From the NCBI RefSeq assembly GCF_021869535.1, contig NW_026262701.1, positions 84,258,001 through 84,322,000 of the forward strand: a stretch of 64,000 bases of DNA, written 5' to 3'. The notes beneath the pieces are model-generated. The model saw only the letters and a program-made list of their open reading frames with translations, was not told where the DNA came from and made no database searches. Positions 1-55,784 of this stretch are shown one piece after another; within the stretch, counting starts at the first letter, position 1, and every line of letters starts with the position of its first letter. The translations under genes and the position numbers were made by a program. Source of the stretch: Mytilus californianus (Eukaryota).

Positions 1-969
1 TAACTATCATCCATATGTAAAAGTAAATCAATTGACAAAAAAATTACTTATTTTATTACATAACAAAGAAATAAATGTGTTTTGATAGAAGGAAAATCAT
101 GCTATGATGAAAATTAATATAATTTTTCATAGTGAAATATTTTCCCACAGTAAGAATTTTATTTACTGTTTTATGCACTTTAAGAGTTACACCTTACACC
201 ATGTAAGGAAAGCCTAAGTGACCTCTTTTATTTGTTTTGTTTTGACTTACAGGTGGATCACCTTTCAGGTTAACGAGATCTAAGGTAAAGCTCAAAGTAG
301 TACTACCTCTTCAGGAGAGTACTTATGTTTGGTAGAAAATATCTTCAAAAAATGTTTGTCCAAATTTAAATATTCTGATGAAAAGATTTTGAAGTTTTCG
401 AAATAATCTGAATAAATTTTCTTTGGGTAGAAGAGATGAAAAGATAGTTTTGTTTTTTTTTCTAATCTTTTCAGATATTGTAGGTCTTAGATTTACTTGT
501 AATCATGCATAAACGGTGAATAATAATGGAGTATACAATATTTTAAAACAAAGCCCTTTTCTTGCAAAAATTCATAGTTAAACAAATGCTTCATATGCTG
601 GAGACTCATTAAAAAACTCATCATATTTTGTACAAACGCTATTTTGATTCATAACAATGACAAAATTTTAGTGCTGCATGCCAATTTTCACATTATATAA
701 TATTATTTTTCTAAACATCATATTCCATGCAGATGTAAAGCTGAATGGACCATGATAAACCTCCCTGCATTGAGGAATTTAACAACTTAATAAACTCATA
801 TCTGTATATGGAATCTAAAAACAAACAGATGGACGGGGATTGTCAGTCTTTATATAGACTAACTTATATAGCTATAAGAATCGTAATGTTTGATGATTGA
901 CCTAACTATCTTGATAAAATCTTTACTATGAAGGGTAGGTGTAATAATTGCAGGGTAGATTTACTGTTA

Positions 970-2576
970 TCATTACATTAATCTTATTCACATTGACGAA
1001 ATTTGGTTTGTGCACTTTACCTAAGCAAACATCACCTATAATTACCCAACCGAAAAAGAGCTCCTGGCCAAATGGCGTGCCCTTCGGTCCTGTCAACTGT
1101 TTATACACGTGGTGCGCTTCTAGGACATCTCTGCCAATTAAAAGTTGAATGTCTATATTCGGATTCAAATCTAACATTTGATGAGCTATCTCCTGTAAAT
1201 GGGGATAGGATTTTGCTATATCGGGAGTCGGAATTTCTGATTTTTCGTCTGAGATTGCACTGCATTCTATTACTGTGTTTCAAGTTTTCCATTACCAGAC
1301 AATGACTCAATTATCAGACTTTCTGCGCATCTACCGCTCATAATGGTGCGCCCAGCGCAAGATGACATAGTATACTGAGTGGCTGATGTATTTATACCTA
1401 ACTGATCGAACAGCTCTGTCTTAGCAAGAGTCCTGTTACTTTGGTCGTCCAATATAGCGTACAAATAAACGGCTTTATCTGGGAAGTTCTTCAGGTACAC
1501 ATGGACCTGAACGGTTTTTTCCACATGATTTACCACTAAATCCACATAATGACGTGCACTTGGATCACAACGTATGATCATCAGCATTTTGCGATGTTTC
1601 AGATGATTTCTCCCCGCCGTCAGGAGAATTAGATTTTGCAGAAAAATGCATAGCGGTAATATGACAACTACTTCCACAATGTTCACATTTAACTGTCACG
1701 GTACAATTTCTTGACATATGTGTTGTCGAATGACAGCATTTGAAACAAATCTTATTGTCCTTCAGGTATGATATTTTCTACGTTCTTCATAAGTCTTTGC
1801 TTTGAAAGCTCGACAAGTATTCAAATTTTGATTGGCTTTATGAATAGGACAACGAACAGCCTCTTTCTCTTCGTTCTGTTTCAGATTCACATCCGTTTTT
1901 CGGTTAAAAGCAGACGTTGCGCTATGGTTAACTTTTCGAGTATCATTTGTTTTTTTTTAGAATATGTCGTTTCAGTATTTTTATAAATAAAGGCAGGATC
2001 GTTTTTGACAGCACTAACCTCTCTGATAAATTTCACAAAATACGAAAAAGGTGGAAATGGTACATTGTTTCTCAGTTTGTATTGCATTGCGATGCGCGTG
2101 TTGTCCACTTCTCTTGTATACTGTACGGTAATTTTTCCACGATTAGTAAAACACCAGAGGAAGAGTCGAAATATGACAATGAATTCGAAAATATCTCATT
2201 CTCCTTCGAAGATTCGATTTGTGTGAGTATATCCAATAGTTCATAAAGTCGACTATGATCCTTGTTTGTTAATTTTGGAAACTTCTGTAGTTTTGTTTTA
2301 ATTGCCTCCTCTACCATCTCCGGTCTACCATAGCGTTCGTCGAGGCGCTCCCATATACGACAAAGACCAGTATTTGGATTGTTCACATTCGACGCACGAA
2401 TATTTTGCGAAAACTTAGAAGATTCACGGCCGAGCCATTTTACTATTAAGTCCATTTCTTCGAAAGCCGTAACTGAGAGTTCTTCTTAAATACTTTTAAA
2501 AGTAGCTTTCCATGAAGCGTAAGTTTCCTGACAGTCATCAAAGTTCTGAAACCTAGAAAGTAATAAATCTTTCTTT
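970..2576 (-). pseudogene. BEL/Pao gag C-terminal part, zinc knuckle and aspartic protease
   Basis: ORFs 2072-2455, 1887-2108, 1270-1686 and 926-1177 carry the gag, ILDDQS protease and GWVIIG motifs, split by stops and frameshifts. Confidence 0.88.
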
Positions 2577-2578
2577 AA

Positions 2579-3677
2579 CAAGAGTGCATACGCTGAAATG
2601 TCTCGCCTTCTTAACTAATCACTGATATTATGTTGATAGTCCTAAATAAAAAGCTTTATTACAACTGTCACATAAACTTAACATTAACCAAGAAAACTAA
2701 ACATTGACCAATGAACCATGAAAATGAGGTCAAGGTCAGATGAACCATGCCAGGCAGGCATGTACAACTAACAATTCTTCCATACAACAAATATAGTTGA
2801 CCTATTGCTTATCATGCTTATAGTTCAAGAAAAACAGACCAAAACACAAAAACTTAACACTGACCAATGAACTGTGAAAATGAGGTCAAGGTCAAATAAA
2901 ACCTGTGCGACTGACATATAGATCATAAAATATTTCCAAACACCAAATATAGTTGATCTATTGCATATAGTATTAGAAAAAAAGACCAAAACTCAAAATC
3001 TTAACTTTGACCACTGAACCATGAAATGAGGTCAAGGTCAAATGACACCTGCCAGCTAGACATGTACACCTTACAATCATTCCATAAACCAAATATAGTA
3101 GACTTATTGCATACAGTATAAGAAAAACAGACCAAAACACAAAAACTTAACTATAACCACTGAACCATTAAAATGAGGTCAAGGTCAGATGACACCTGCC
3201 AGTTGGAAATGTACACCTTACAGTCCTTCCATACACCGAATATACTTGACCTATTGCTTATAGTATCTGAGATATGGACTTGACCACCAAAACTTAACCT
3301 TGTTCACTGATCCATGAAATGAGGTCGAGGTCAAGTGAAAACTGTCTGACGGGCATGAGGACCTTGCAAGGTACGCACATACCAAATATAGTTATCCTAC
3401 TACTTATAATAAGAGAGAATTTAACATTACAAAAAATGTTAACTTTTTTTTCAAGTAGTCACTGAACCATGAAAATGAGGTCAAGGACATTGGACATGTA
3501 AGTGACGGAAACTTCGTAACATGAGGCATCCATATACAAAGTATGAAGCATCCAGGTCTTCCATCTTCTAAAATATAAAGCTTTCAAGAAGTTATAGCTA
3601 ACGCCGCCGCTGCCGTAGCCGCCGCCGGATCACTATCCCTATGTCGAGCTTTCTGCGACAAAAGTCGCAGGCTCGAC
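2579..3677 (-). mobile_element. Helentron-associated (HINE-like) non-autonomous element, family A, inserted in gag
   Basis: Terminal hairpin GTCGAGC-CTGCGAC-TTTT-GTCGCAG-AAA-GCTCGAC, a (GGC)-rich tract, about 6 internal 146-156 bp repeats (TGAGGTCAAGG at 2725, 2881, 3027, 3174, 3320, 3476) and an end ...GCACTCTTG. It sits in a TT (AA) site. Confidence 0.8.
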
Positions 3678-3682
3678 AATAA

Positions 3683-4751
3683 AAACTTAGTCAAGTCGAA
3701 CACTACAGACTGATCATGTTTTGGTGGCAGTTGTGGCTGAGTAAATTCAAAATCAGCTGCACACGGATTTATGGTTTGTTTTGTTTGAACTTCTGGTTTT
3801 ATATCTTCAGCTATCGATCTATCCAAATCATCAACTTCATATTTCGGCAAATTCATTAGCGTAGGATTCATGTTAAAATGGTTCCGAGATGCCGGGGTAT
3901 GCGAACTTAAATTATCAAGATTCTTCGGAATAACTTGTGGAACATTGTTATTCTTGTCTTGAGTTCTGAGTTGTTCTACTTCTTTAAATTGTTCATTCAC
4001 ACATTTCTCTTGTTAGTGTCATTTTCACTTTTTCTAATGGCTCTTTGTCTTCTTGTAACGACAACGATCTTTTATCGCTCTCGGCCTCTTCTAAAACTTT
4101 GACCTCGACCTCTGCGACTGCGGTATCTGTCTGTTGTTTAAGCAGTGCTAAATCTGCATCAACTTCAGCCTGTTCATGATCCCTTAAAGCCTTAAGCTGT
4201 ATTTCTAATTCACTTAATCTTGCTTTTTGCTTAATTAATTTTGTTTGTTGCTCAAAATATTGTAACTTTATTCGCATCAGCTGTTACACGTTTCTGAGCT
4301 ATAACCGAACTCGAAATAGATCCACTTTTACCACTATTGTTTGAACGGACAGACTGCATAGGAGCTACTGACATTGTTTCGGCTGCGGTTAATTTCAATG
4401 TCTTAATTGGTTGTATTGTATTGTCAATTATTTCAGTGCACTTTTTAAACTCCTTCTTAAAAGCGGATAATGTTTCATTACACTGTCTTCACTATTTTTG
4501 CGTGTTCAAAACTGAATATAATTATCTGAGTTTTCACAATATTTTTCACGGAACTTTTTCTCTAGTTTGCGTAGAGGTTTTAACTCCTTCGGGCAATCTG
4601 TAAATTCTTCTAGTAAATTTTCAACAGCTTCCCACGACCCGTCAATTCGCTTAAGGTACTTTACCTTGCGTGATTCATAAAGATCTTGATCTTTCTCTGT
4701 CATCTTATGTTCATGTGTCGTCTCAGACGGAAGGGGTTGTGATTGTGCCAT
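3683..4751 (-). pseudogene. BEL/Pao gag N-terminal part (coiled-coil, frameshifted)
   Basis: ORFs 4506-4751, 3993-4277 and 3584-4000 are successive frames. The FDLTKFLL codons rejoin KKDLLLSRF across the 2579-3677 insertion. Confidence 0.75.
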
Positions 4752-4829
4752 TTCGTAAAATTGTTTGTAGGAACTACAATGTCTGCATATTATTCTGTAT
4801 TAAACTACGCCGACTCACAATCTTTTTAC

Positions 4830-30957: not shown

Positions 30958-31050
30958 TTATATTATACTGTCCTCGTCTATTTTGAAATCTATTTTTCTA
31001 TTTATTCTGTGTGTTGTTGTATTATCGTTGAGATGCCAGTACAAATTTCC
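30958..31050 (-). CDS. SLC4 terminal coding exon C (GNLYWHLND...IDEDSII*)
   Basis: CTGCAG acceptor, TAA at 30958-30960; start resembles exon B. An AATAAA lies downstream at ~30619-30624. Confidence 0.65.
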   Translation of the reverse strand, partial: GNLYWHLNDNTTTHRINRKIDFKIDEDSII

Positions 31051-34000: not shown

Positions 34001-37000
34001 ATTCAGTTATTGAATATTAGGGTAATACTGTTAAGTGGTTATTTTTGGCAAAGTTTAAATTTTGCGATTTCTAGTGCAAAACCTTTTCGCACATTTTATT
34101 ATCACGTTTTACTTGTACATGATTCTTATCTTTCTTTCTTAAAAACAATTTTTACGCGAGTAAATGTTTTCGCGATTTTATATCAATCCCGAAATAATCG
34201 AATATAAACCCCTCGCGAAAATTTCAGACTTACAGAATGACATATTTTTTTATAACTGTTAACACTGTTTTCTGGCATTTTTATACATTTAAAAAAGTAA
34301 AACAAATATACTGAACTCCAAGAAAAATTCAAAAAGGAGTCCATAAAAATGGAAAATATTAAACGCTATCAATCAATAGAACAAATGAAAAACAACTGCC
34401 ATTTTCCTGACTTGGTACAGGCATTTTCTGAAGAAAATGGTGGATTAAACCTGGTTTTCTAGCTAGCTAAACCTCCCTCTTGTACGACAGTTGTTTATAG
34501 TTCCGTTATCTTGACAAATTTGGGTAAGCAACCCAAACCTAAAATCGGAAAAAATATAATAAAAATGATTGTTGTGTCAATTTCATTGACTAATTATCTG
34601 AAAAGACTTATGCCAACAAAATCATAAGCCGATGCGACTAATAATTGCAAAATATCTTACGTCATCTTTATCATCATCTTCAACAATCAATTCACCAGCA
34701 TCTTCCTGTTTCATCATCTTGTCCTCTAAATTCTGGTCGTCGAGCCATTTTAATTCATTCATTGTAAAGATTCTTTCCATTCCCTTTCTTACAAAACATG
34801 TACCAAGTACCATAACAGGGAAAACGATAGAAATCGTTTTTATAGCTTTAATGGCCCATAGTATTCCCAAACATAAAATTTGGAAAAATGTGAACAGGTG
34901 AATTCGATTGATCCTCACATGGCGAAGATACATTCTGTCTGGTTGGTATTTGGCTGGCATAAACATTATCAAGAAACGGTCTTTAAACTGTTGAATAGAT
35001 TTTTTCATATATTTTAGTGCAACCCTGTAAGTTTTAGAGGGGTAAGTACCAACTACAAGACAACTATAAAAAACAATGGCGGAACATACAAAGCTCTTAA
35101 ATCGATATAAGATCTAAGGTGTTAAGAAGGGTAAGCAGATCCTGCTTAACATGCTCAAATAGTGGTAACCGTAGTAGTGATTAGTTTCATTCGGTGACCA
35201 TCGGGGATAAGAAGACGGGATTGTGATTAGGACAATAGGAACAGAATGTTGGTAATCTGTGACTCAGATACCGTATAGCGGGGTTTTTTTCGCGGGTTGT
35301 ATATTTTCGCTTATTTTCGCGGATAGAACAAAATCGCCAAAATAAATTCCGCCAATTTAAAATTGCACATGCAATGATATTGATAAAAGTTTTGAATCCG
35401 CCAAAATAATAACCGCCAAATTATTTGGTATACCTTATTTAATAAAATCGCGAAATTTTACACCCACGAAAATAATCCGCTATACGGTATGCCATAACGA
35501 TCAACCAAATCTAAATGGCGTTCGTAAAACTTTGAAGGTAAAACCTTAATCTTAGCACTTGGAACGTCGATTAAAGCACCGGACTGATGTAAAAAAAAAA
35601 AACTGAAACTGAACCACTTTTGTCATGATGTTTCACAAAAAAATATTTAAGGTACAATGTAAATTGAAGGAACCACGTAAGGTTTTACGAATAAAACAAC
35701 CAACTCAGACTGATATATTTTCCGATTGACCATCTCGTGACGGCAATATAAAATTGATGAAGTAATGAAAATATCTATGTTCCCTATAACCCCGAATTGA
35801 ATAATTTCTGTGAATGTGCTCTATGAGGTTGATGATTTGTTCGATTTTGTTTTCTCTCTCTGAAACTTATTCTACCATTTTCAGTTAAAGAATATAGCGT
35901 GTTATTACTGTGTGTATGTTGTGATATGTTGTAAAATAGATTATATGTTTTTTTCAATATGCAATATAGTTTTTATTAAAGTGCATACCTGCATTCCTCG
36001 GAAAGCTGATACTCCCATGTACAAAAATACACCATATAAAACAGGCATGGGCACAAGCTGAAACAGGAAGTGCATAAGACACTCAACACAATTCCTGCCT
36101 TTATCAAACAGTGATTACAAAGAAATTATGTCTTATGCTATCATTTGGTATTTACTTTTTCATTAATTTTTATACTCATTAAAAAAAGAGAGAAATGCAG
36201 GATTTCATTTTTTTGTGTGCAATTAATAATTTTTCCGTTTACAACAATTAAATAGGTTATGGTATTGACTTAAGGAATTTCAACCCTTAGTGTATATTTG
36301 TTTTGTTTTGTTTTGTTTTGTTATGTTTTTTTTTGTTTTTGCTTTTTTTTTCTTTTTTGTAGTTGTTGTTATCCTTTTCGAATACGAATGTATTAGTTTT
36401 ATTTTAAAATATAAACGAATTGAATTATTTTTACAGTTTAAAACATCTAAAAAATGAAGATGTAAGGGAAATCAGTAAAGCAAATTGAAGATGTGACAAC
36501 ATCACAAAACAAAATTATATCTAATTTAAAGTTCACATATTCATTCTTTGAAACTTTTTTTAATAATCAATGAATAAAATGCACTATATTGTACAAATCA
36601 GTATGGTCTAGATGACAAGCGATCAAGAGCCTAACGTAAAGAAAAGAAACATATCCCTTGTTGAAGACTGTACGTGGTCAATGTCATGTATAGTATCAAT
36701 GTATTATTGGGTTCCTGGCTAATTGACGTTTACGAAAATATCTTCTTTATAAATACAATGTGTACTAAATTTTTGCTTTAATTTTATGTAAACAAATTAA
36801 GTATAACTGTATCACATACCTGTAACATTTTAGTCATAAATACAGAGCATCCGTTCAAGATTGCAATAATCAGAGGAGTAAGACGCTGTTCCCTAAAAGA
36901 ATGTATATTTTTTTGACAAAATATTGGATACTGTTTTTGTTAACGCTGTATGCTTTACGCACTATCAAACATTGTTACAAGAAAGGTAACACATTACTTA

Positions 37001-40000
37001 TTCTAAATTAATGTATTAGTTAAATTGGGAATGGAAACGGGGGATTTGTCAAAGAGACAATAACCCGATCAAAGAGCAGAAAACAGCCCAATGCCACCAA
37101 TGGGTCTTCAACACAGCGAGAAAATCTAGCACCTTGAGGCCGGCTTTAGCTGGCCACCGAAAACTAATTTATACTAGTTCAGCGAAAATGGACGTCACAC
37201 TAAATTCCGAAACATATAAATGAACCAATGTACACTTTTTCGAGGTGTATGTATTTTCATGTAATTCGCGGTATGTATCTTTTTGCGGAAAACAAATACA
37301 CCCGAATACAACTGAAGTGTATACGTGCGTATAAAAGCCTTGAATTAATATTGCCCGTATTTTTAACTCTACAGTTACGTTTACCCTAGATATATTCAAT
37401 TGAAACCCGAAAACGTTTAAACACAAGTAGAAATTAGTACTACAAAGGATTACACGTCAAAAAAATAATCCAGGCCAATCGAATTAGATACGCATTTTTT
37501 GTGTAAAAACAACCTAATGGAACAATACCTTTATCTTACGGACCACTTTCTAAGGATTGAATAAATATTATCATTTTGCAATAGGAACCTTGTTTTATAT
37601 TATAAAGCACCTAAGACTTTGAGAAACTTTAAATGCTTAATGAAATATTTCTAACTGGCGTTGTAATATTTTGACTGTCAAATCCAAAATGAATAACAAA
37701 CGAAGTTGAAAACAAAAACAATAACAATAAGCCCTAAAGGTTACACCCGTTTTAAAATGAAGCTCATTTACACGATAAAGACCATTATGTTAATATTGTT
37801 ATCAGAAATAATGCGACAATAAATAAAAGTGAATTCATCGGTTATATCAAGTTAATGAAAATAATACGCGCGAAAAAAGAACACTTACAACATGTTTCTT
37901 GTGTTTTTAGGAATAGATATCTATTGATATTTTTTTCTGGATATGTCATGAATATTAAGAAGATGATATTTATTATGTTTGACCCTAATTCTTGATTCAT
38001 TTTATTTCATTTATTTGTACACACCTGCATCCAAGGAAGACTGGTTTCTCACCGGGGGCAGTACATTTAGATTCCATTTTGAGACTGTTAACATGTGACA
38101 TTGATCGAACTGTGGCAGCAACATACCAAGGAAGACCGAAAAAAGAACACACCACAATACAGATCGTTGCTACTGTCAAATCTAAATGGTAGCCACAACC
38201 TTTCTGTAAAAGAGAAGAAAGGTCCATTCTTACCGTTTATATTTTTTTAATTGATTTTTGGTAAATTAAAGAACCCAAGCCAGACGGAAAAATATATGTT
38301 AGTCTGTTAGACTGTAGTATAAGGGTTGTTCAGATTACCCTAAAGTTATTTGAAAAATGGGAAAACATAGAACTAAATTGATAGCAAACGCCATAAACCA
38401 TATGCGCATAACCATTCAGAAAGACATATATCTAAAAAAACATCTTGTTTGTTTGCTACTACGCTAAATTTTACCTCAAATATCCATTTATTTTTTACAT
38501 GTGAAACACAATATAGTTTGTATATGACGGTATCAATTTAATCAATTACTTTTAAGAGACCCATTTTTTTAAGACAAAGAAATAGTTCGATCCCTGCTAA
38601 GTCTGTTCGTTGGGTTTTTCTATAATAACATAAACGGTACCAATTTTACTGCACCAGATGCGCTTTTCGACAATGTATGTCTCTTGTCTCTTCAGTGATG
38701 TTCTAGGCCAAAATATTTGAAATTCAAAATTTGTATACAATTTATATAAACTAAATCATAGCTAATCATTTAAAGTAATTAAAAAAAACTCGAACAAAGC
38801 GTTTAAACCACAGTCGAACTTAACATAACAAATAAAAGACGGTCGAACGCCCTCTTTTAGTATTTCTGTTTTAAACCCGTTCGTTTTTCTACTTTCGAAT
38901 GTTTTGTATTTTTGGATCGATTGCCTCTGATGTTATTTCATAAACACGAGTTATGCGGACAGAAATCGATCGTTAACGTTTTTGTTTTAAGAAATCACTA
39001 TACAATTTCGTATCACCAGCTCAGTAGTCAGCACTTTTGTGTCATAAGTTATCATTGATATGGTCATAATCTTAAATTTACTGTTAATAAAACTTTTTTT
39101 TCAAAATACTAAGGATTTTCTACCACAGGAATATATAACTTTAGCTGTATTTTGCAAAACTTTTCGGAATGTTAGGTCCTCAATGATCTTCAAATTAGTA
39201 CTTTATTTGGCCTTTCTAACATTTTGGATTCAAGATTCACTGATGAGTCTTTTTTTAATCCTGTTATCCATCATGAGTTTCTTCACAAAACATTTTCACT
39301 AATAGTGTTAAAAGTGAATAAAAAATAACAAATTTACGATGAGTAAAATGCATTTAAAAAGTCCACATTTATATCCGTATAATTTTAATAAACTAAGAAA
39401 TTTAACCTTTAACTGATTTTCCTTTCTGTTTATGATAACAGCTGTAATTTGTTGATCCATAAAAATCAGAATTACAGCTACAACCGCTGGTAGAGATGCA
39501 AGTATCATTGTCCACCAGGGATTACCAGAGCTGAACGGACTGATAAACCATGGCCTTGTAGGGTCTGAAGGCTACAATACATTTAACAATCAAACTAACT
39601 ATATCAATCTGTGAAAATCTTGGAAAGAAGTGCAATTTACTGATAAAAAAGGAAATAAAAGAATTGGCATCAACCAAAAAGTAGAACATTTAACGTTGAT
39701 TTTTTAAATATAGATATAAGCATCAATAGTTTACCAATGTCCAAATACTTAATCGAGTATAAAGACAAATCAAGGTAACACACAGTAACGAAGGGAATCG
39801 CTTGAACTCCAATGTAGCAAGACCAGGTACTTAGACAGGGTATGCATCTTCTGCGATGCGTACATTATAGTCTTAATGTAATGGATAACGTCTTAACCAA
39901 ACCTGAATTTTATCTGGAACTATTAGCTTCGGAGTTGGTACTCCTAATCTTGCATCAAATAATACCATTAAACAAATGGCGATGAAGACTGCAAAGTCTC

Positions 40001-43000
40001 CTATGGTCTGTCGAACCTATAAACAAAATTGCAATGGCTATTAAGTGCATACACTGTGAACAGGATTTTGTATAGCGGAAAGAGAAGGTTAACAACACAC
40101 TCTGTTCTTAACATCGTCAGAAAATTTGAATAAAAAAAATAAACACAAAACAAATTACGTCGGACGACTGCAAGCTGTAACTGATGAAATAGCTCATATA
40201 AAATACTTGAATCAGTAAGGCTAAAAGGATTTGTAGTTTCAAATTGTTAACGAATGACCAAACCCTACTTATAGATTTTAACAAATTGGTTCATGCTGTA
40301 TAATAATATATTTTGTAGAATTTTCTATCTCAATATACCATGATTGAATTCATCGTACATCATTGTGATTTCTCAGAAATAAAGATAAGAATTGAGTTTT
40401 TAAGTTAAAAAAAACAATTATCTTACTTAACATTTTCTGAAGTTCCAATTTAATCTGTATATAGGTCATTTTTTAGGAATACACTTATGAAGAAAAGTGA
40501 TTCAGTTAGAAAAGCAATGACTTTAAACTTACTATTGTCGGGAAGAATCGACTTTTCTTCATCATAACCAACCACCACGCAATTGCAAAAGTTCCAATAC
40601 CAAGTATGATAGATAAGAAAAACACATTGTCATGATAAATTGGTGTTTCACAACCGGAACCTTCCAAGACGCCTCCTAGATCAACACAATCCTCCTTCTT
40701 TATACTATTCCAGTTGATAGTTGAATTCATCGTTGAATTTAAATTCAAATAAGAAGTTAGCATAGTAGTGATATTCTCAGTCTGATTATTAGGAACACAG
40801 GTGCATGAATAGTCTAATGGTATGTCTGGATGTGTATTATATATATGTGTGTCAGCTATTGATACTATCTTTTTAATTGATTCGACTATGAAAATAATAG
40901 CTATTAAGCAAGCAAAACTTTCTTCGGTAAATCTCGTTATATAACGAACTAATGCACTCAAGTCAAACGCAATAATGATCAGTAAAAAAATAGGGCTAAC
41001 CACAGACCTATCATACATCTAAATGACATAAAATCCCATGTGTTGTCCCTAAAAATAAAATAAGAATAAACATTATTTCTTATCATAAACGATTAGAATC
41101 GAAAGCTGAAGAAATGTTTGTTTTGTCAATTAGTCCAATTATGTACAATTTCCATAACAAGAAAGGTTTTATTTATAAATTGTTTTGCTTTTCAAAAATT
41201 GAAATCTTTTGTTCTTCAAAACACGTGGATTAGACTGCAATATGTGTTAAGTGGAGCTTGTGTAGGCTGGTTCCCTCCCTTGCAACATATCTGAGACACC
41301 CTTGTTGTCAAGTCAGATCCAAATAGATAAAGGACAGAGAACCAGTCTAGAGCTTGTGTTACTAAAAAATATAAATATTGTTTGAGTTAATATTTGTTTT
41401 TGATTCTTTATTTGGTGGTCGTCGTGTCTGTCTATTCTCTTACTGATTCAACGTTGATAACTACTCATTTAGATCTTGATTTTTTTGTAAAATATGTTTG
41501 CTAGTTTCGAGTACTTACTGGCTGTCGAACTGTTATTATACATACCTACACATGTTATAGATTATTATCTCAAGTACTAAAACAGGACCAGTACTACCCA
41601 TTATGATAAGTGGCTGTCCACCAAACAATGCAAACGCCAGATTAACAAATGCAACGGCTAAAAGACATTCCATTGTTCCCTGTAAATAAAACACAAAAGG
41701 GAATTTTTTGTGTATAAACTTTTTATTGTATCTGCTGCAGTGTACTTCAAAATTATAGACATGACTACTGATGACTATAGATATTACGCATGCCGGGCAG
41801 AACAAGTTAACCGTACTGGATTACATTTATTGTGTCATCCGTTATTTATTTCAAAGATCGTATTGAATATGATTTACCTTTAAGTGCTGTCAGTTCTTTA
41901 TTATTCACATTTATCTTCTTTTTTTCTTTCTTTCCTGTCTCAATGATGTATATCCCTAATTTCCTGTAAATGTCTGTGTAATACTTTGTTTGTTAGTATT
42001 CATCTTCGTCTTAAACTATCGCTTTTGTACTTTTACATACTTTATGAGATCGAATTCTATTGATTGCACGATATCTTAATACATCAAAATATAGACAATG
42101 AACGTTTGAAGTTGAAAATGAATTATTTGGAAATCAATGCTAAAGAATGATATATTTAGATATTTTGATATCATAAATGTTGAGCCAAAAATAACATAAC
42201 ATTAATTTTGTATATTATATCATTTTTAAATGTTAATTTTTAAACAATGACGGAAACTGAAGTTGCATTAAAATAAAAGAATAATTCGAATCCTTTTGTG
42301 AAAAAAAATTCTGCAATGCCTTTGTCAACGAAAATATCATTCAGAAAATTGTAAAAGGGAAATAAAAGAAATTAAAAAATGTTAAACATTTGATGCATAT
42401 TCCTTTTATCATACTGTCAATCCATTATAAAATTCAGGTTAATTTGACTGTTATCAAACCATTAGTGTAAAAAAATTGCAATGAATTTATATCTTTATTT
42501 ACTACAACAAATGCAACAACGAAGAAATTGAATTAATGATTATACATGTACCACCCAAGTTATTTCAAAATCGTATTTCGCATCTAGAATCTCACTCCTT
42601 CAACGAATGTCGCTGTAAAAAGTATTGTGATCCACAAGATTTTTTTGGGATGAATATTTTGCTTTACTGAAAACTTACCATGTGCTGGTCTGTTTCCTGA
42701 CCCAGAAAAGCTCCAAATGTAATGTTAGGTGCCAGTGTAGCTAGATACATGAAAAGTATAGAACCAATACACTGTATGTGTAAACCATCCTTAAAGTCGC
42801 TGATGTAAAAAGGAATTTTTCGTTTAACATCTTTTATAAGACCTCCAAACAATCTACAAAAAAGAAAATTTATTTTTTATGCTCGTCAAAAAAATAATAC
42901 GACTGTTAAAATTAGATTTTTAGGACACATTACCTTTATTCAACGGATTGTATGCCAAAAAAAACCGTATTACATATAAATTATGAATTGACAAATGTAT

Positions 43001-55000: not shown

Positions 55001-55784
55001 TTATATCTACATACAGTATATTTGATAGTGTTTTAAGGTATATATAAATGAAACGTTTCACTGGCAATAAATATTAATAAGAGAGACATAGGCAGCTTGT
55101 ATCAGCAACTTCTGAATCATTATGTGAATTTCTATAACCTTTACAGAGAATCAAAAGTTTCTAATTAATTGATGAATTTCTTATTCCGTTATATGATCCA
55201 AATTAGTTTCTGGGTTTTGTAAGCAACGCTGTACTTTGCCATCTCTATAAAAATTGAAGGGATCGTTGTATATGAATATATAAACTCAAATTTTTCTAGT
55301 CAATATTTTTTTGTTTTCAAACTTTTGAGTCTTAGGGAAGCAGTAGAAAATTACAAAAACATGAATATTAATCAATAAGGTATATACATGTTTTCAAACT
55401 TAAGTAATACAGTGAAAACCGATGACGTAATGGTATTATTGTTAATTCTGGTGTGATCATAATTAAAGTATAACAAACTCCAAAATATGTGATCTGATGA
55501 TTGGTACAAGACAATAGAAATTTCATTCAACAAGTAAAGAATGTTCAATAGGTGTTCAATTTTATTCTTCAAATAAGATTTTTTTATATTTTATTATTCA
55601 AGTACTTAAACAAGTTGTAATGTGTTTAAAAAAAATCTTCATTGTTACGGAGTGAACTATCATGCTGCTACTATTTAAATAATACATACGCTCTCTGTGA
55701 CTTAAAGTGTCACCAGTTTGAGTTCCATCAGACATTGATGAATTTCTCATTTTTCCACTTGTTTCTAGTGTTGAGTTTTCAGTT
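30958..55784 (-). CDS. SLC4: SLC4-family bicarbonate transporter (Na+-coupled NBC/NDCBE-like lineage), 20 exons, ~1035 aa
   Basis: Manually spliced GT-AG exons with mutually consistent phases. Band-3 cytoplasmic and HCO3- transporter motifs: [67 protein letters not shown]. One frameshift in the 40533-41048 exon. The specific paralogue is not assignable. Confidence 0.95.
31704..31817 (-). CDS. SLC4 tail exon B ([10 protein letters not shown]...[14 protein letters not shown])
   Basis: TTGCAG acceptor, GTAAGT donor, 114 bp, phase 0-0. Confidence 0.7.
32203..32268 (-). CDS. SLC4 tail exon A ([22 protein letters not shown])
   Basis: TACAG acceptor, GTAAGT donor, phase 0-0, open; similar to exon B. 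No family homology recognised. Confidence 0.65.
34027..34234. mobile_element. Degenerate TA-site MITE
   Basis: TACTGT... left end and ...ACTTACAG right end, with TTTTCGCG-rich interior like 35271-35487. Confidence 0.45.
34661..34987 (-). CDS. SLC4 exon (TM13-14 and proximal acidic tail)
   Basis: [17 protein letters not shown]...FPVMVL...ELKWLDD; 327 bp; GTAAGA donor. Confidence 0.95.
35271..35487. mobile_element. Tc1/mariner-type MITE with TA TSD, inserted in a Penelope-like 3' fragment
   Basis: TA|CCGTATAGCGG...CCGCTATACGG|TA. Confidence 0.88.
35989..36057 (-). CDS. SLC4 exon ([23 protein letters not shown])
   Basis: 69 bp, phase 0-0. Confidence 0.96.
36820..36892 (-). CDS. SLC4 exon (EQRLTPLII...)
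   Basis: 73 bp, phase 2-0. Confidence 0.94.
38025..38203 (-). CDS. SLC4 exon (KGCGYHLDL...[14 protein letters not shown]...FLGCR)
   Basis: 179 bp, phase 0-2. Confidence 0.96.
39407..39571 (-). CDS. SLC4 exon (PSDPTRPW...[19 protein letters not shown])
   Basis: 165 bp, phase 0-0. Confidence 0.96.
39903..40016 (-). CDS. SLC4 exon ([10 protein letters not shown]...TPKLIVP)
   Basis: 114 bp, phase 0-0. Confidence 0.95.
40533..41048 (-). CDS. SLC4 exon (TM4-TM6 and Cys-containing extracellular loop 3), frameshifted at the T7 run 40984-40990
   Basis: [21 protein letters not shown] is in one frame and [21 protein letters not shown] in another. The exon is 516 bp where 3n+1 is required. Confidence 0.93.
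41546..41679 (-). CDS. SLC4 exon (TM2-TM3, [12 protein letters not shown])
   Basis: 134 bp, phase 0-2. Confidence 0.96.
42679..42853 (-). CDS. SLC4 exon ([12 protein letters not shown]...TM1)
   Basis: 175 bp, GTAAGT donor. Confidence 0.96.
43936..44021 (-). CDS. SLC4 exon (ERRNFF...DDTLVRTGR)
   Basis: 86 bp; ends in the conserved L.RTGR before TM1. Confidence 0.92.
44862..45008 (-). CDS. SLC4 exon ([10 protein letters not shown]...VLPPGQWDP...PSQ)
   Basis: 147 bp, phase 0-0. Confidence 0.95.
45315..45560 (-). CDS. SLC4 exon ([14 protein letters not shown]...[13 protein letters not shown])
   Basis: 246 bp, CTGCAG/GTGAG. Confidence 0.96.
47939..48027 (-). CDS. SLC4 exon ([12 protein letters not shown]...SPLVK)
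   Basis: 89 bp, GTGAGT donor. Supplies the phase 1-to-0 change needed between its neighbours. Confidence 0.75.
48561..50056 (+). mobile_element. HINE-like element, third family, with ~167-bp internal repeats
   Basis: TTTTTAGCTCACCTGGCC..GGGCCAAGTGAGC terminal hairpin and (CGTC)n tract. GGAGTTATTGCCCTTAAA recurs near 49000, 49330, 49500, 49665 and 49835. The 3' end is GGTGAGCG. Confidence 0.75.
50245..50406 (-). CDS. SLC4 exon (LITEELAK...LLTRHEHEQ...MPK)
   Basis: 162 bp, phase 1-1, GTAAGT donor, equivalent to the LL..H.HQ motif. Confidence 0.88.
50723..50883 (-). CDS. SLC4 exon ([20 protein letters not shown]...)
   Basis: 161 bp, AG/GTAAGT. Confidence 0.96.
51846..51975 (-). CDS. SLC4 exon (IRSISRL...WMESAR)
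   Basis: 130 bp, AG/GT, homologous to LFTELDEL...WKETAR. Confidence 0.92.
53030..53290 (+). pseudogene. Penelope-like RT C-terminal fragment
   Basis: [33 protein letters not shown] and [20 protein letters not shown]; same family as 26950-27540. Confidence 0.8.
53990..55010 (+). mobile_element. Family B dispersed repeat (longest copy)
   Basis: Ends GGAGAGTCATACCACATCTTCTTATATCTA. Related ends at 48430-48495, 53705-53985 (inverted), 58790-59070 and 60370-60730. Confidence 0.8.
55690..55784 (-). CDS. SLC4 exon 1 seen (candidate start ATG at 55750; [20 protein letters not shown])
   Basis: TTTTAG acceptor and GTATGT donor. The phase-1 end joins the next exon to give ERIRSI, like NBCe1 AERIRFI. 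AAAATG context. Confidence 0.65.

Follow-up and report, generated by a model that had tools for sequence, protein, structure and literature searches.

Can a bicarbonate transporter keep the residues that hold Na+ and at the same time carry the arginine with which the anion exchangers contact their substrate? This question is raised by an SLC4 gene on the minus strand of a 64,000-nucleotide (nt) stretch of Mytilus californianus DNA (NCBI RefSeq assembly GCF_021869535.1, contig NW_026262701.1, positions 84,258,001 to 84,322,000 of the forward strand). The whole stretch is called the window here, and positions are counted from its first letter. A first-pass annotation, made from the letters alone, had described the interval 38025-39571 as a hybrid ion-coordination site, in which a scaffold of the Na+-coupled type is combined with an AE1-type Arg in transmembrane segment (TM) 10. 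We found that this interval consists of exons 13 and 14 of the gene, on the minus strand, and the intron between them. The Asp of TM8 and the Arg of TM10 are both present in a transcribed gene, and together they mark a clade of mussel proteins inside the Na+-coupled branch of the SLC4 family.

The known members of the family differ at these two positions. AE1-3 have Arg in TM10 and Glu in TM8, whereas the Na+-dependent members have Asp and no Arg. In NBCe1, NDCBE and NBCn1, carbonate is anchored in the central site (S1) by Na+, which the TM8 Asp and Thr hold and which is needed because the site has no positive side chain, while in AE1-3 the TM10 Arg contacts the anion directly (PMC13263692; PMC8478935). 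According to the NBCe1 structure paper, every Na+-coupled SLC4 transporter is non-polar at the I803 position (PMC5834491). The I803R mutation by itself abolishes NBCe1 transport (PMC5834491), and Huynh et al. turned NBCe1 into a Cl--driven exchanger by a seven-residue swap comprising SST-GFS, D754E, V798S, A800T and I803R (PMC5834491).

With exons 13 and 14 as separate queries, phmmer was run on the complete set of PDB chains, and no gap fell near either site in the alignments. Residue 33 of exon 14, an Arg, aligns to position 803 of NBCe1 (6caa, Ile), 730 of AE1 (4yzf) and 1060 of AE2 (8jnj, Arg), and the same column is Leu in NDCBE and NBCn1. The NBCe1 and AE2 alignments were read directly, and the AE1 position was derived from the listed alignment ranges. 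The proposal that this Arg occupies the AE1 R730 position is thus borne out by the structure-chain alignments, which place it exactly there, and the NBCe1 and AE reference motifs given in the annotation agree with the NBCe1 and AE2 alignments. The TM8 Asp aligns to NBCe1 D754 and NBCn1 D930, and the Thr four residues on aligns to NBCe1 T758 and NBCn1 T934. TM3 reads MGSTGP and the stretch before TM10 reads YVAATV, both of the Na+-coupled type. The known Na+/carbonate ligands are therefore retained (TM8 Asp and Thr, TM3 GSTGP, TM10 VAATV), as are all of the NBCn1 TM5 site residues (I731, F735, E738 and K742). A Lys in TM13 is kept in all of the clades compared, and it is presumably the ligand Lys, judged by motif. 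Extracellular loop 3, encoded by exon 11, contains four Cys and four N-x-S/T sequons (NQT, NIT, NST and NST). The features that the annotation had read from the sequence (the Asp codon at 39455-39457, GSTGP, the Cys and sequons of loop 3, and the CGA Arg codon at 38105-38107) were all found again. The gene and the parts that matter here are as follows.

30958-55750, minus strand: the whole SLC4 gene, a 20-exon spliced model of 1034 amino acids (aa)
42679-42853, minus strand: exon 9, the start of the membrane domain and TM1, with the clade-specific Gly-to-Ala change in TFG[A]FLG (spliced model)
41546-41679, minus strand: exon 10, TM2, the strand and the N-terminus of TM3 (IIMGSTGP), where GSTGP is of the Na+-coupled type
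40533-41048, minus strand: exon 11, TM4, TM5, extracellular loop 3 and TM6 (spliced model)
40984-40990, minus strand: a run of seven T (T7) in TM4 (exon 11), two bases longer than in the in-frame allele (frame break and reads)
39903-40016, minus strand: exon 12, TM7, 114 nt, in-frame (spliced model)
39407-39571, minus strand: exon 13, TM8 with FMDQQIT (spliced model and PDB-chain alignment)
39455-39457, minus strand: the Asp codon GAT, equivalent to NBCe1 D754 and NBCn1 D930 (ungapped alignment around the site)
38025-38203, minus strand: exon 14, TM9 and TM10, containing KGCGYHLDL (spliced model and PDB-chain alignment)
38105-38107, minus strand: the Arg codon CGA, equivalent to AE1 R730, AE2 R1060 and NBCe1 I803 (ungapped alignment)

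The spliced model was guided by the M. edulis ortholog. Its 20 coding exons run from an ATG at 55750 to a stop at 30958, and all 19 introns are of the GT..AG type. The product consists of a Band 3 cytoplasmic domain and a HCO3- transporter membrane domain, and the two Pfam profiles (PF00955, 757 bits; PF07565, 254 bits) score well over their curated cut-offs with near-full coverage. It is identical to P0284 (XP_052063699.1) at every residue save two masked at a frameshift, and RefSeq names that record 'LOW QUALITY PROTEIN: electroneutral sodium bicarbonate exchanger 1-like'. Exon 12 is skipped in the M. trossulus 'isoform X2' model P0003, and such skipping would remove one transmembrane helix. 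In the window species the RNA depth on exon 12 is 25, which matches the neighbouring exons, and exon 12 is therefore mostly included.

Does the Arg make this protein an anion exchanger by descent? The overall similarity gives a clear answer. Full-length scores were 907 bits for NBCn1, 894 for NBCe1 and 891 for NDCBE, against 576 for AE2, 562 for AE3 and 527 for AE1. Scores near 900 with the solved NBCn1, NBCe1 and NDCBE chains leave no doubt about the fold. AE1-3 thus lie about 330 bits below the Na+-coupled members, and the window protein does not group with them. At six of the seven positions that convert NBCe1 towards AE1, it has the NDCBE/NBCn1 state (Gly-Ser-Thr before TM3, the TM8 Asp, and Val and Ala of TM10); the first of these, Gly, is uninformative because it is common to AE1, NDCBE and NBCn1. 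The sole AE-specific state among the seven is the TM10 Arg. The features that define AE1-3 are divided in the same way: the protein has their Arg at the S1 site and lacks the TM8 Glu (it has Asp), GFSGP in TM3 and S-x-T-T-V before TM10. From the Na+-coupled branch it departs in the TM10 position, which carries no positive charge there (Ile in NBCe1, Leu in NDCBE and NBCn1) and is Arg here. Because it lacks a defining feature of each neighbouring class, it is placed as a variant inside the Na+-coupled branch, to which it belongs.

Two maximum-likelihood trees of the membrane domain were built with the site column removed, a quick tree of 111 rows and a careful tree of 49 rows under a site-heterogeneous model. 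Both were rooted on Leu-type NBC/NDCBE proteins and were made of NBC-like sequences only; types are named here after the residue at the TM10 site. In the careful tree, with which the quick tree agrees, the Arg clade is monophyletic at 100/100. Its sister is formed by the mussel Ser-type genes at 99/93, and it is nested among the Ser-type proteins of bivalves. Across the root are the proteins of the Leu-type, from squid (NDCBE), insects and vertebrates. The stem branch of the Arg clade is about twice as long as that of its sister (0.47 vs 0.22, careful tree). The first-pass annotation had assigned the protein to the Na+-coupled lineage and proposed a phylogeny to see whether Asp plus Arg defines a clade. 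The former is upheld by the bit scores and by the nesting in the molluscan NBC-like clade, and the latter is answered by the fully supported monophyly of the Asp+Arg proteins.

The Arg clade contains at least four sub-lineages. Three M. coruscus members share a 3.8-Mb contig, and the accession numbers, listed for two of them, differ by only seven; this common contig and the near-consecutive accessions suggest a tandem cluster. The closest relative of the window protein is P0152 (about 95% identity in the membrane domain), whose 90% cluster includes the M. coruscus ortholog P0283. On the basis of these trees, the Arg subfamily appears to have arisen by duplication of a molluscan NBC-like Ser-type gene, and the Arg would have been fixed on the stem branch.

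How widespread is the TM10 Arg on such a scaffold? It is present in all 12 clade members and in none of the 116 other aligned NBC-like proteins. When exon 14 was searched against 1.84 billion cluster representatives, Arg was found in two of the best 150 matches, the M. trossulus ortholog P0003 and an anonymous fragment, P0134. A word search with P0003 returned 11 cluster representatives with Asp and Arg at 60-100% identity; a second search, limited to the exon 14 region, gave no further Arg-bearing protein outside the clade. All of the named members come from Mytilus (M. trossulus, M. edulis, M. galloprovincialis, M. coruscus and M. californianus), and the subfamily is specific to mussels, where it probably extends from Mytilus to the wider Mytilidae. 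The next relatives of P0003, at about 50% identity in many molluscs, have Asp and Ser, and others have Leu, Thr, Asn or Glu. Literature searches for a TM10 Arg in the NBC-like proteins of invertebrates, for this Arg in any NBC-type SLC4 and for the mussel Arg subfamily turned up no paper in the library searched. The existence of the gene is already known through RefSeq annotation by similarity.

Two further observations concern charged residues at this position. P0134 is a 162-aa fragment from an anonymous 1-kb genomic contig (Logan, SRR14366769; locus L002:205-693), about 54% identical to the mussel exon, with an NBC-like TM9-10 exon reading PWFVAATVRSITH. Known from this exon alone, it may be a case in which the TM10 Arg arose separately on a scaffold of the NBC type. 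P0088 of Lingula anatina (XP_013390286.1) and the fragment P0047 have Glu at the same position (TVES) beside the TM8 Asp, a charge opposite to that of the Arg in the mussel clade.

The history of the clade can be followed in its codons. From four clade coding sequences (the window gene and three transcript contigs), the pairwise ratio of nonsynonymous to synonymous divergence (dN/dS) was 0.11-0.17 within the clade, and dS exceeded 1 between paralogs. The Arg clade is under purifying selection. Three members, the window gene among them, encode the Arg by CGA, and the deepest, the metatranscriptome contig P0160, encodes it by AGA. As both codons occur in the clade, the Arg has been kept through synonymous change. 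In the membrane domain, 15 positions are fixed in the Arg clade with a residue other than the one conserved in 85% or more of the remaining proteins. Among them, TM1 has Ala in place of Gly (TFG[A]FLG), and the residue immediately ahead of GSTGP, which corresponds to NBCn1 L665, is Met in place of Leu. The annotation had also called TM1 divergent, and this was right in part: the Gly-to-Ala change and a Leu-to-Met change are specific to the clade, but YLATL..PN.TFG is common to the Ser-type relatives. We looked for convergence of the other clade-specific substitutions on AE1-3 residues and found none; the position of the TM6 Phe-to-Gly change, for example, is Met in AE2.

The Ser-type proteins read TV-S-A-L in TM10, and the Arg clade reads TV-R-S-M. 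Since the immediate ancestor was Ser-type, the route was probably from Ser to Arg rather than from Ile or Leu to Arg. Three substitutions would account for the change, as would a 3-nt insertion together with a 3-nt deletion; the Ser codon of the Ser-type sister is TCA, and this shared codon hints at the latter. Conversion of exon 14 by a paralog of the Leu-type had some appeal, as Leu CTA is one step from Arg CGA and the downstream S-x-x-H-V-N-S-L resembles the Leu-type. It was rejected because the identity of exon 14 is equal to the mussel Ser-type and Leu-type genes (0.68 vs 0.68). It is also contradicted by the Ser-type PWY, which the clade has retained instead of PWF.

Is the gene in use? 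Four runs from the same organism were mapped to 35900-41800, including the RNA run X21 (stranded, about 6% of the run) and the DNA runs X1, which consists of Logan assembled contigs, and X3. The X21 depth was 5-31 on every exon within this interval and about zero in the repeat-free introns, and high intronic bins were confined to multi-copy repeats. Over the exons, first mates of X21 map only to the plus strand, as expected of a minus-strand transcript in stranded libraries of the usual kind. In run X25, a spliced contig passes from 36820 to 36057 and matches the modelled junction of exons 15 and 16 exactly. The window SLC4 gene is therefore transcribed, and its Arg and Asp codons are without variant in X21, X1 and X3.

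What, then, might the Arg do? In the mechanism that we propose, its guanidinium group would lie in the central S1 site beside the TM8 Asp and serve as a built-in cation. It would take over part or all of the anchoring done by bound Na+ in NBCe1 and NDCBE, and the presence of Arg in place of Na+ would alter the cation coupling. Such a placement of the guanidinium seems most likely because a conserved and expressed protein has both Asp and Arg. We regard the odds of an altered cation coupling, of one kind or the other, as evenly balanced. The most likely outcome would be Na+-independent exchange of anions (Cl-/HCO3- or carbonate), and the second most likely would be transport with one Na+ fewer. 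The annotation had likewise suggested a move toward Na+-independent anion exchange or an unusual stoichiometry, and published mutagenesis and structures make such a shift plausible. In its full form, the proposal is that mussels, independently of AE1-3, turned an NBCe-like ancestor into a bicarbonate/carbonate transporter that is Na+-independent or Na+-sparing, with the Arg as a tethered replacement of Na+ and with the Asp kept. This full form is less certain than altered coupling as such and is more likely false than true. If true, it would be a second natural route to an AE-type mechanism, followed by expansion into several paralogs. SLC4 genes have repeatedly been implicated in shell formation, and on the same condition the Arg subfamily may serve acid-base or shell carbonate transport.

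Several observations weigh against the proposed mechanism, and some of them are shared with the alternatives considered below. The acid in TM8 is Asp, unlike the Glu of the true anion exchangers. The direction in which the Arg side chain points is presumed from homology. The RNA run carries no tissue label, so that a link to shell formation is conjectural. The TM10 position is labile in invertebrate NBC-like proteins, in which Ser, Thr, Asn, Glu and Val are also found, and NDCBE is unaffected by the change L849C (PMC8478935), so that not every change at the site alters coupling. Finally, the reference allele of the window gene is broken, and a relative in M. galloprovincialis has degenerated; both are described with the alternative that they favor.

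The lability of the site and the tolerance of NDCBE lead to the alternative that survives best, a tolerated substitution. The protein would then be an ordinary Na+-coupled bicarbonate/carbonate transporter, and the Arg one more state at a position that is already Leu, Ile, Ser, Thr, Asn, Glu or Val across the NBC-like lineages. The retention of all the Na+ ligands fits this explanation well. However, Arg is the sole charged, long side chain to have been fixed in an entire clade, and I803R alone is enough to stop transport by NBCe1. The long stem of the clade, together with the fixed TM1 Ala and the Met at the L665-equivalent position near the site, also looks like remodelling rather than drift. 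We consider a merely tolerated Arg unlikely, while still a serious candidate.

A second alternative is that the clade, or this copy of it, consists of decaying or non-transporting duplicates, in which the Arg is a disabling change in dispensable genes, as I803R is a loss of function in NBCe1. The state of the reference allele speaks for it. The T7 run at 40990-40984 shifts the frame by 2 bp and leads to a TGA at 40981-40979, truncating the protein in TM4, and it is because of this frameshift that RefSeq carries the low-quality flag. The annotation had spoken of a frame-corrected cDNA, and a real 2-bp frameshift does exist in exon 11. T7 is also present in DNA run X1, which may or may not be the assembled individual. 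On the other hand, a run of five T (T5, two letters fewer at 40984), which restores the frame and the ortholog length, was found in 24 of 26 X21 RNA reads and in an X3 DNA contig. Since T5 occurs in the RNA and in X3 and T7 in X1, the frameshift is a real allele, carried by the assembly, and the gene also exists in another state. It is the in-frame allele that is transcribed, and T7 looks like a segregating null allele. An error of long reads in the homopolymer was also considered as its origin and is not supported, as the assembled contigs of X1 show T7 too.

The other sign of decay comes from P0310 of M. galloprovincialis, a truncated Arg-clade relative of 607 aa that reads PWHAAVTVPS, with Pro in place of Arg, and has DQHIT in TM8. 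This protein, probably a paralog in decay, suggests that genes of the Arg subfamily are born and lost. For the clade as a whole, however, decay is at odds with the low dN/dS in the face of saturated dS between paralogs and with an Arg kept over a change of its codon. For this copy, it is at odds with the close identity to P0152, the canonical splice sites at all of the introns and the in-frame allele of the reads. Decay of the clade or of this gene is therefore quite improbable in our view. An artefact of assembly or annotation, in which the Arg codon or the join of exons 13 and 14 is wrong, could point to the one real oddity of the same gene, the T-run frameshift, but it has virtually no chance and is refuted by the CGA codon and flanks, identical in RNA reads and two independent DNA runs, and by the recurrence of this motif among the orthologs and paralogs of five named species of Mytilus.

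The proposal of a tethered cation bears on how coupling is understood in the family. Structural work takes the main coupling switch to be TM10 Arg paired with TM8 Glu, as opposed to TM8 Asp without an Arg, a view that rests on mammalian proteins and engineered mutants. A natural Asp+Arg clade on an otherwise Na+-type site is a ready-made test of this rule. The clade also supplies a short list of candidate compensating substitutions, and the Ser-type sister gene in the same animals is a matched control. Among lophotrochozoan SLC4s, the TM10 position varies far more than would be expected from the literature, which is based on vertebrates. To mussel biology, the result adds a subfamily of bicarbonate transporters that is specific to the lineage and has several paralogs.

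Repetitive DNA was also seen in the window. At 36885-37278 (intron 14) and 38461-39248 (intron 13), DNA contig depth rises from about 56 to 10^4-10^6, with many loose ends and RNA on both strands; these intervals are very high-copy interspersed repeats that flank exon 14. Downstream of the SLC4 gene, at about 900-4800 on the minus strand, lies a cluster of long open reading frames. The one at 2485-2075 matches DUF1759 (E = 1.7e-6), a domain that we take to be typical of the gag regions of BEL/Pao retrotransposons, and the frame at 1777-1568 has a Cys/His-rich motif resembling a zinc knuckle. This cluster looks like a degraded retrotransposon.

How does the mussel protein compare with the systems already known? 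It resembles NDCBE (SLC4A8), NBCn1 (SLC4A7) and NBCe1 (SLC4A4) in its fold, its pair of domains, its score of about 900 bits, its site motifs and its four-Cys loop 3 of the glycosylated type. Unlike it, these transporters lack the TM10 Arg, and the residue in its place is Leu or Ile. With AE1-3 (SLC4A1-3), which were compared by bit score (527-576) and alignment and stand outside the trees, it shares the Arg at the same TM10 position and the Ser that follows. However, AE1-3 have Glu in TM8, GFSGP in TM3 and Ser/Thr in the TM10 strand, whereas the mussel protein has Asp, GSTGP and Val/Ala.

In the mussel clade, an NBC scaffold has in effect acquired a change of the I803R type naturally, and the nearest counterpart is the NBCe1 I803R mutant (PMC5834491). 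In the engineered NBCe1, the single mutant was inactive and the exchanger needed all seven changes (PMC5834491), whereas the mussel clade has the Arg alone of these. It has extra changes of its own that the NBCe1 mutants do not share (Gly to Ala in TM1, Leu to Met in TM3, and Ala to Ser and Leu to Met one and two residues after the TM10 Arg), and unlike the engineered mutants it is under purifying selection.

Among molluscs, the Ser-type proteins (the NBCe2-like protein of Tridacna squamosa, PMC8519421, and the mussel Ser-type gene) are alike in about 50% identity, PWYVAATV and YLATL..PN.TFG. They differ in reading TV-S-A-L and have been studied for expression and localisation only; the squid NBCe, which has been characterised functionally, may or may not be one of them. 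The squid NDCBE (Doryteuthis pealeii Q8I8G6, P0217) is likewise a mollusc SLC4, about 46% identical to P0003, and its record describes a Na-dependent Cl/HCO3 exchanger and cites its cloning by Virkki et al. 2003. Unlike the mussel protein, it is of the Leu-type and falls in the outgroup clade with vertebrate and insect proteins. Finally, AE4 (SLC4A9) is also a member of the Na+-coupled branch, and its exchange mode departs from phylogenetic expectation (PMC13263692). AE4 has the Asp without a TM10 Arg, however, and the hybrid state of the mussel protein was reached by another route.

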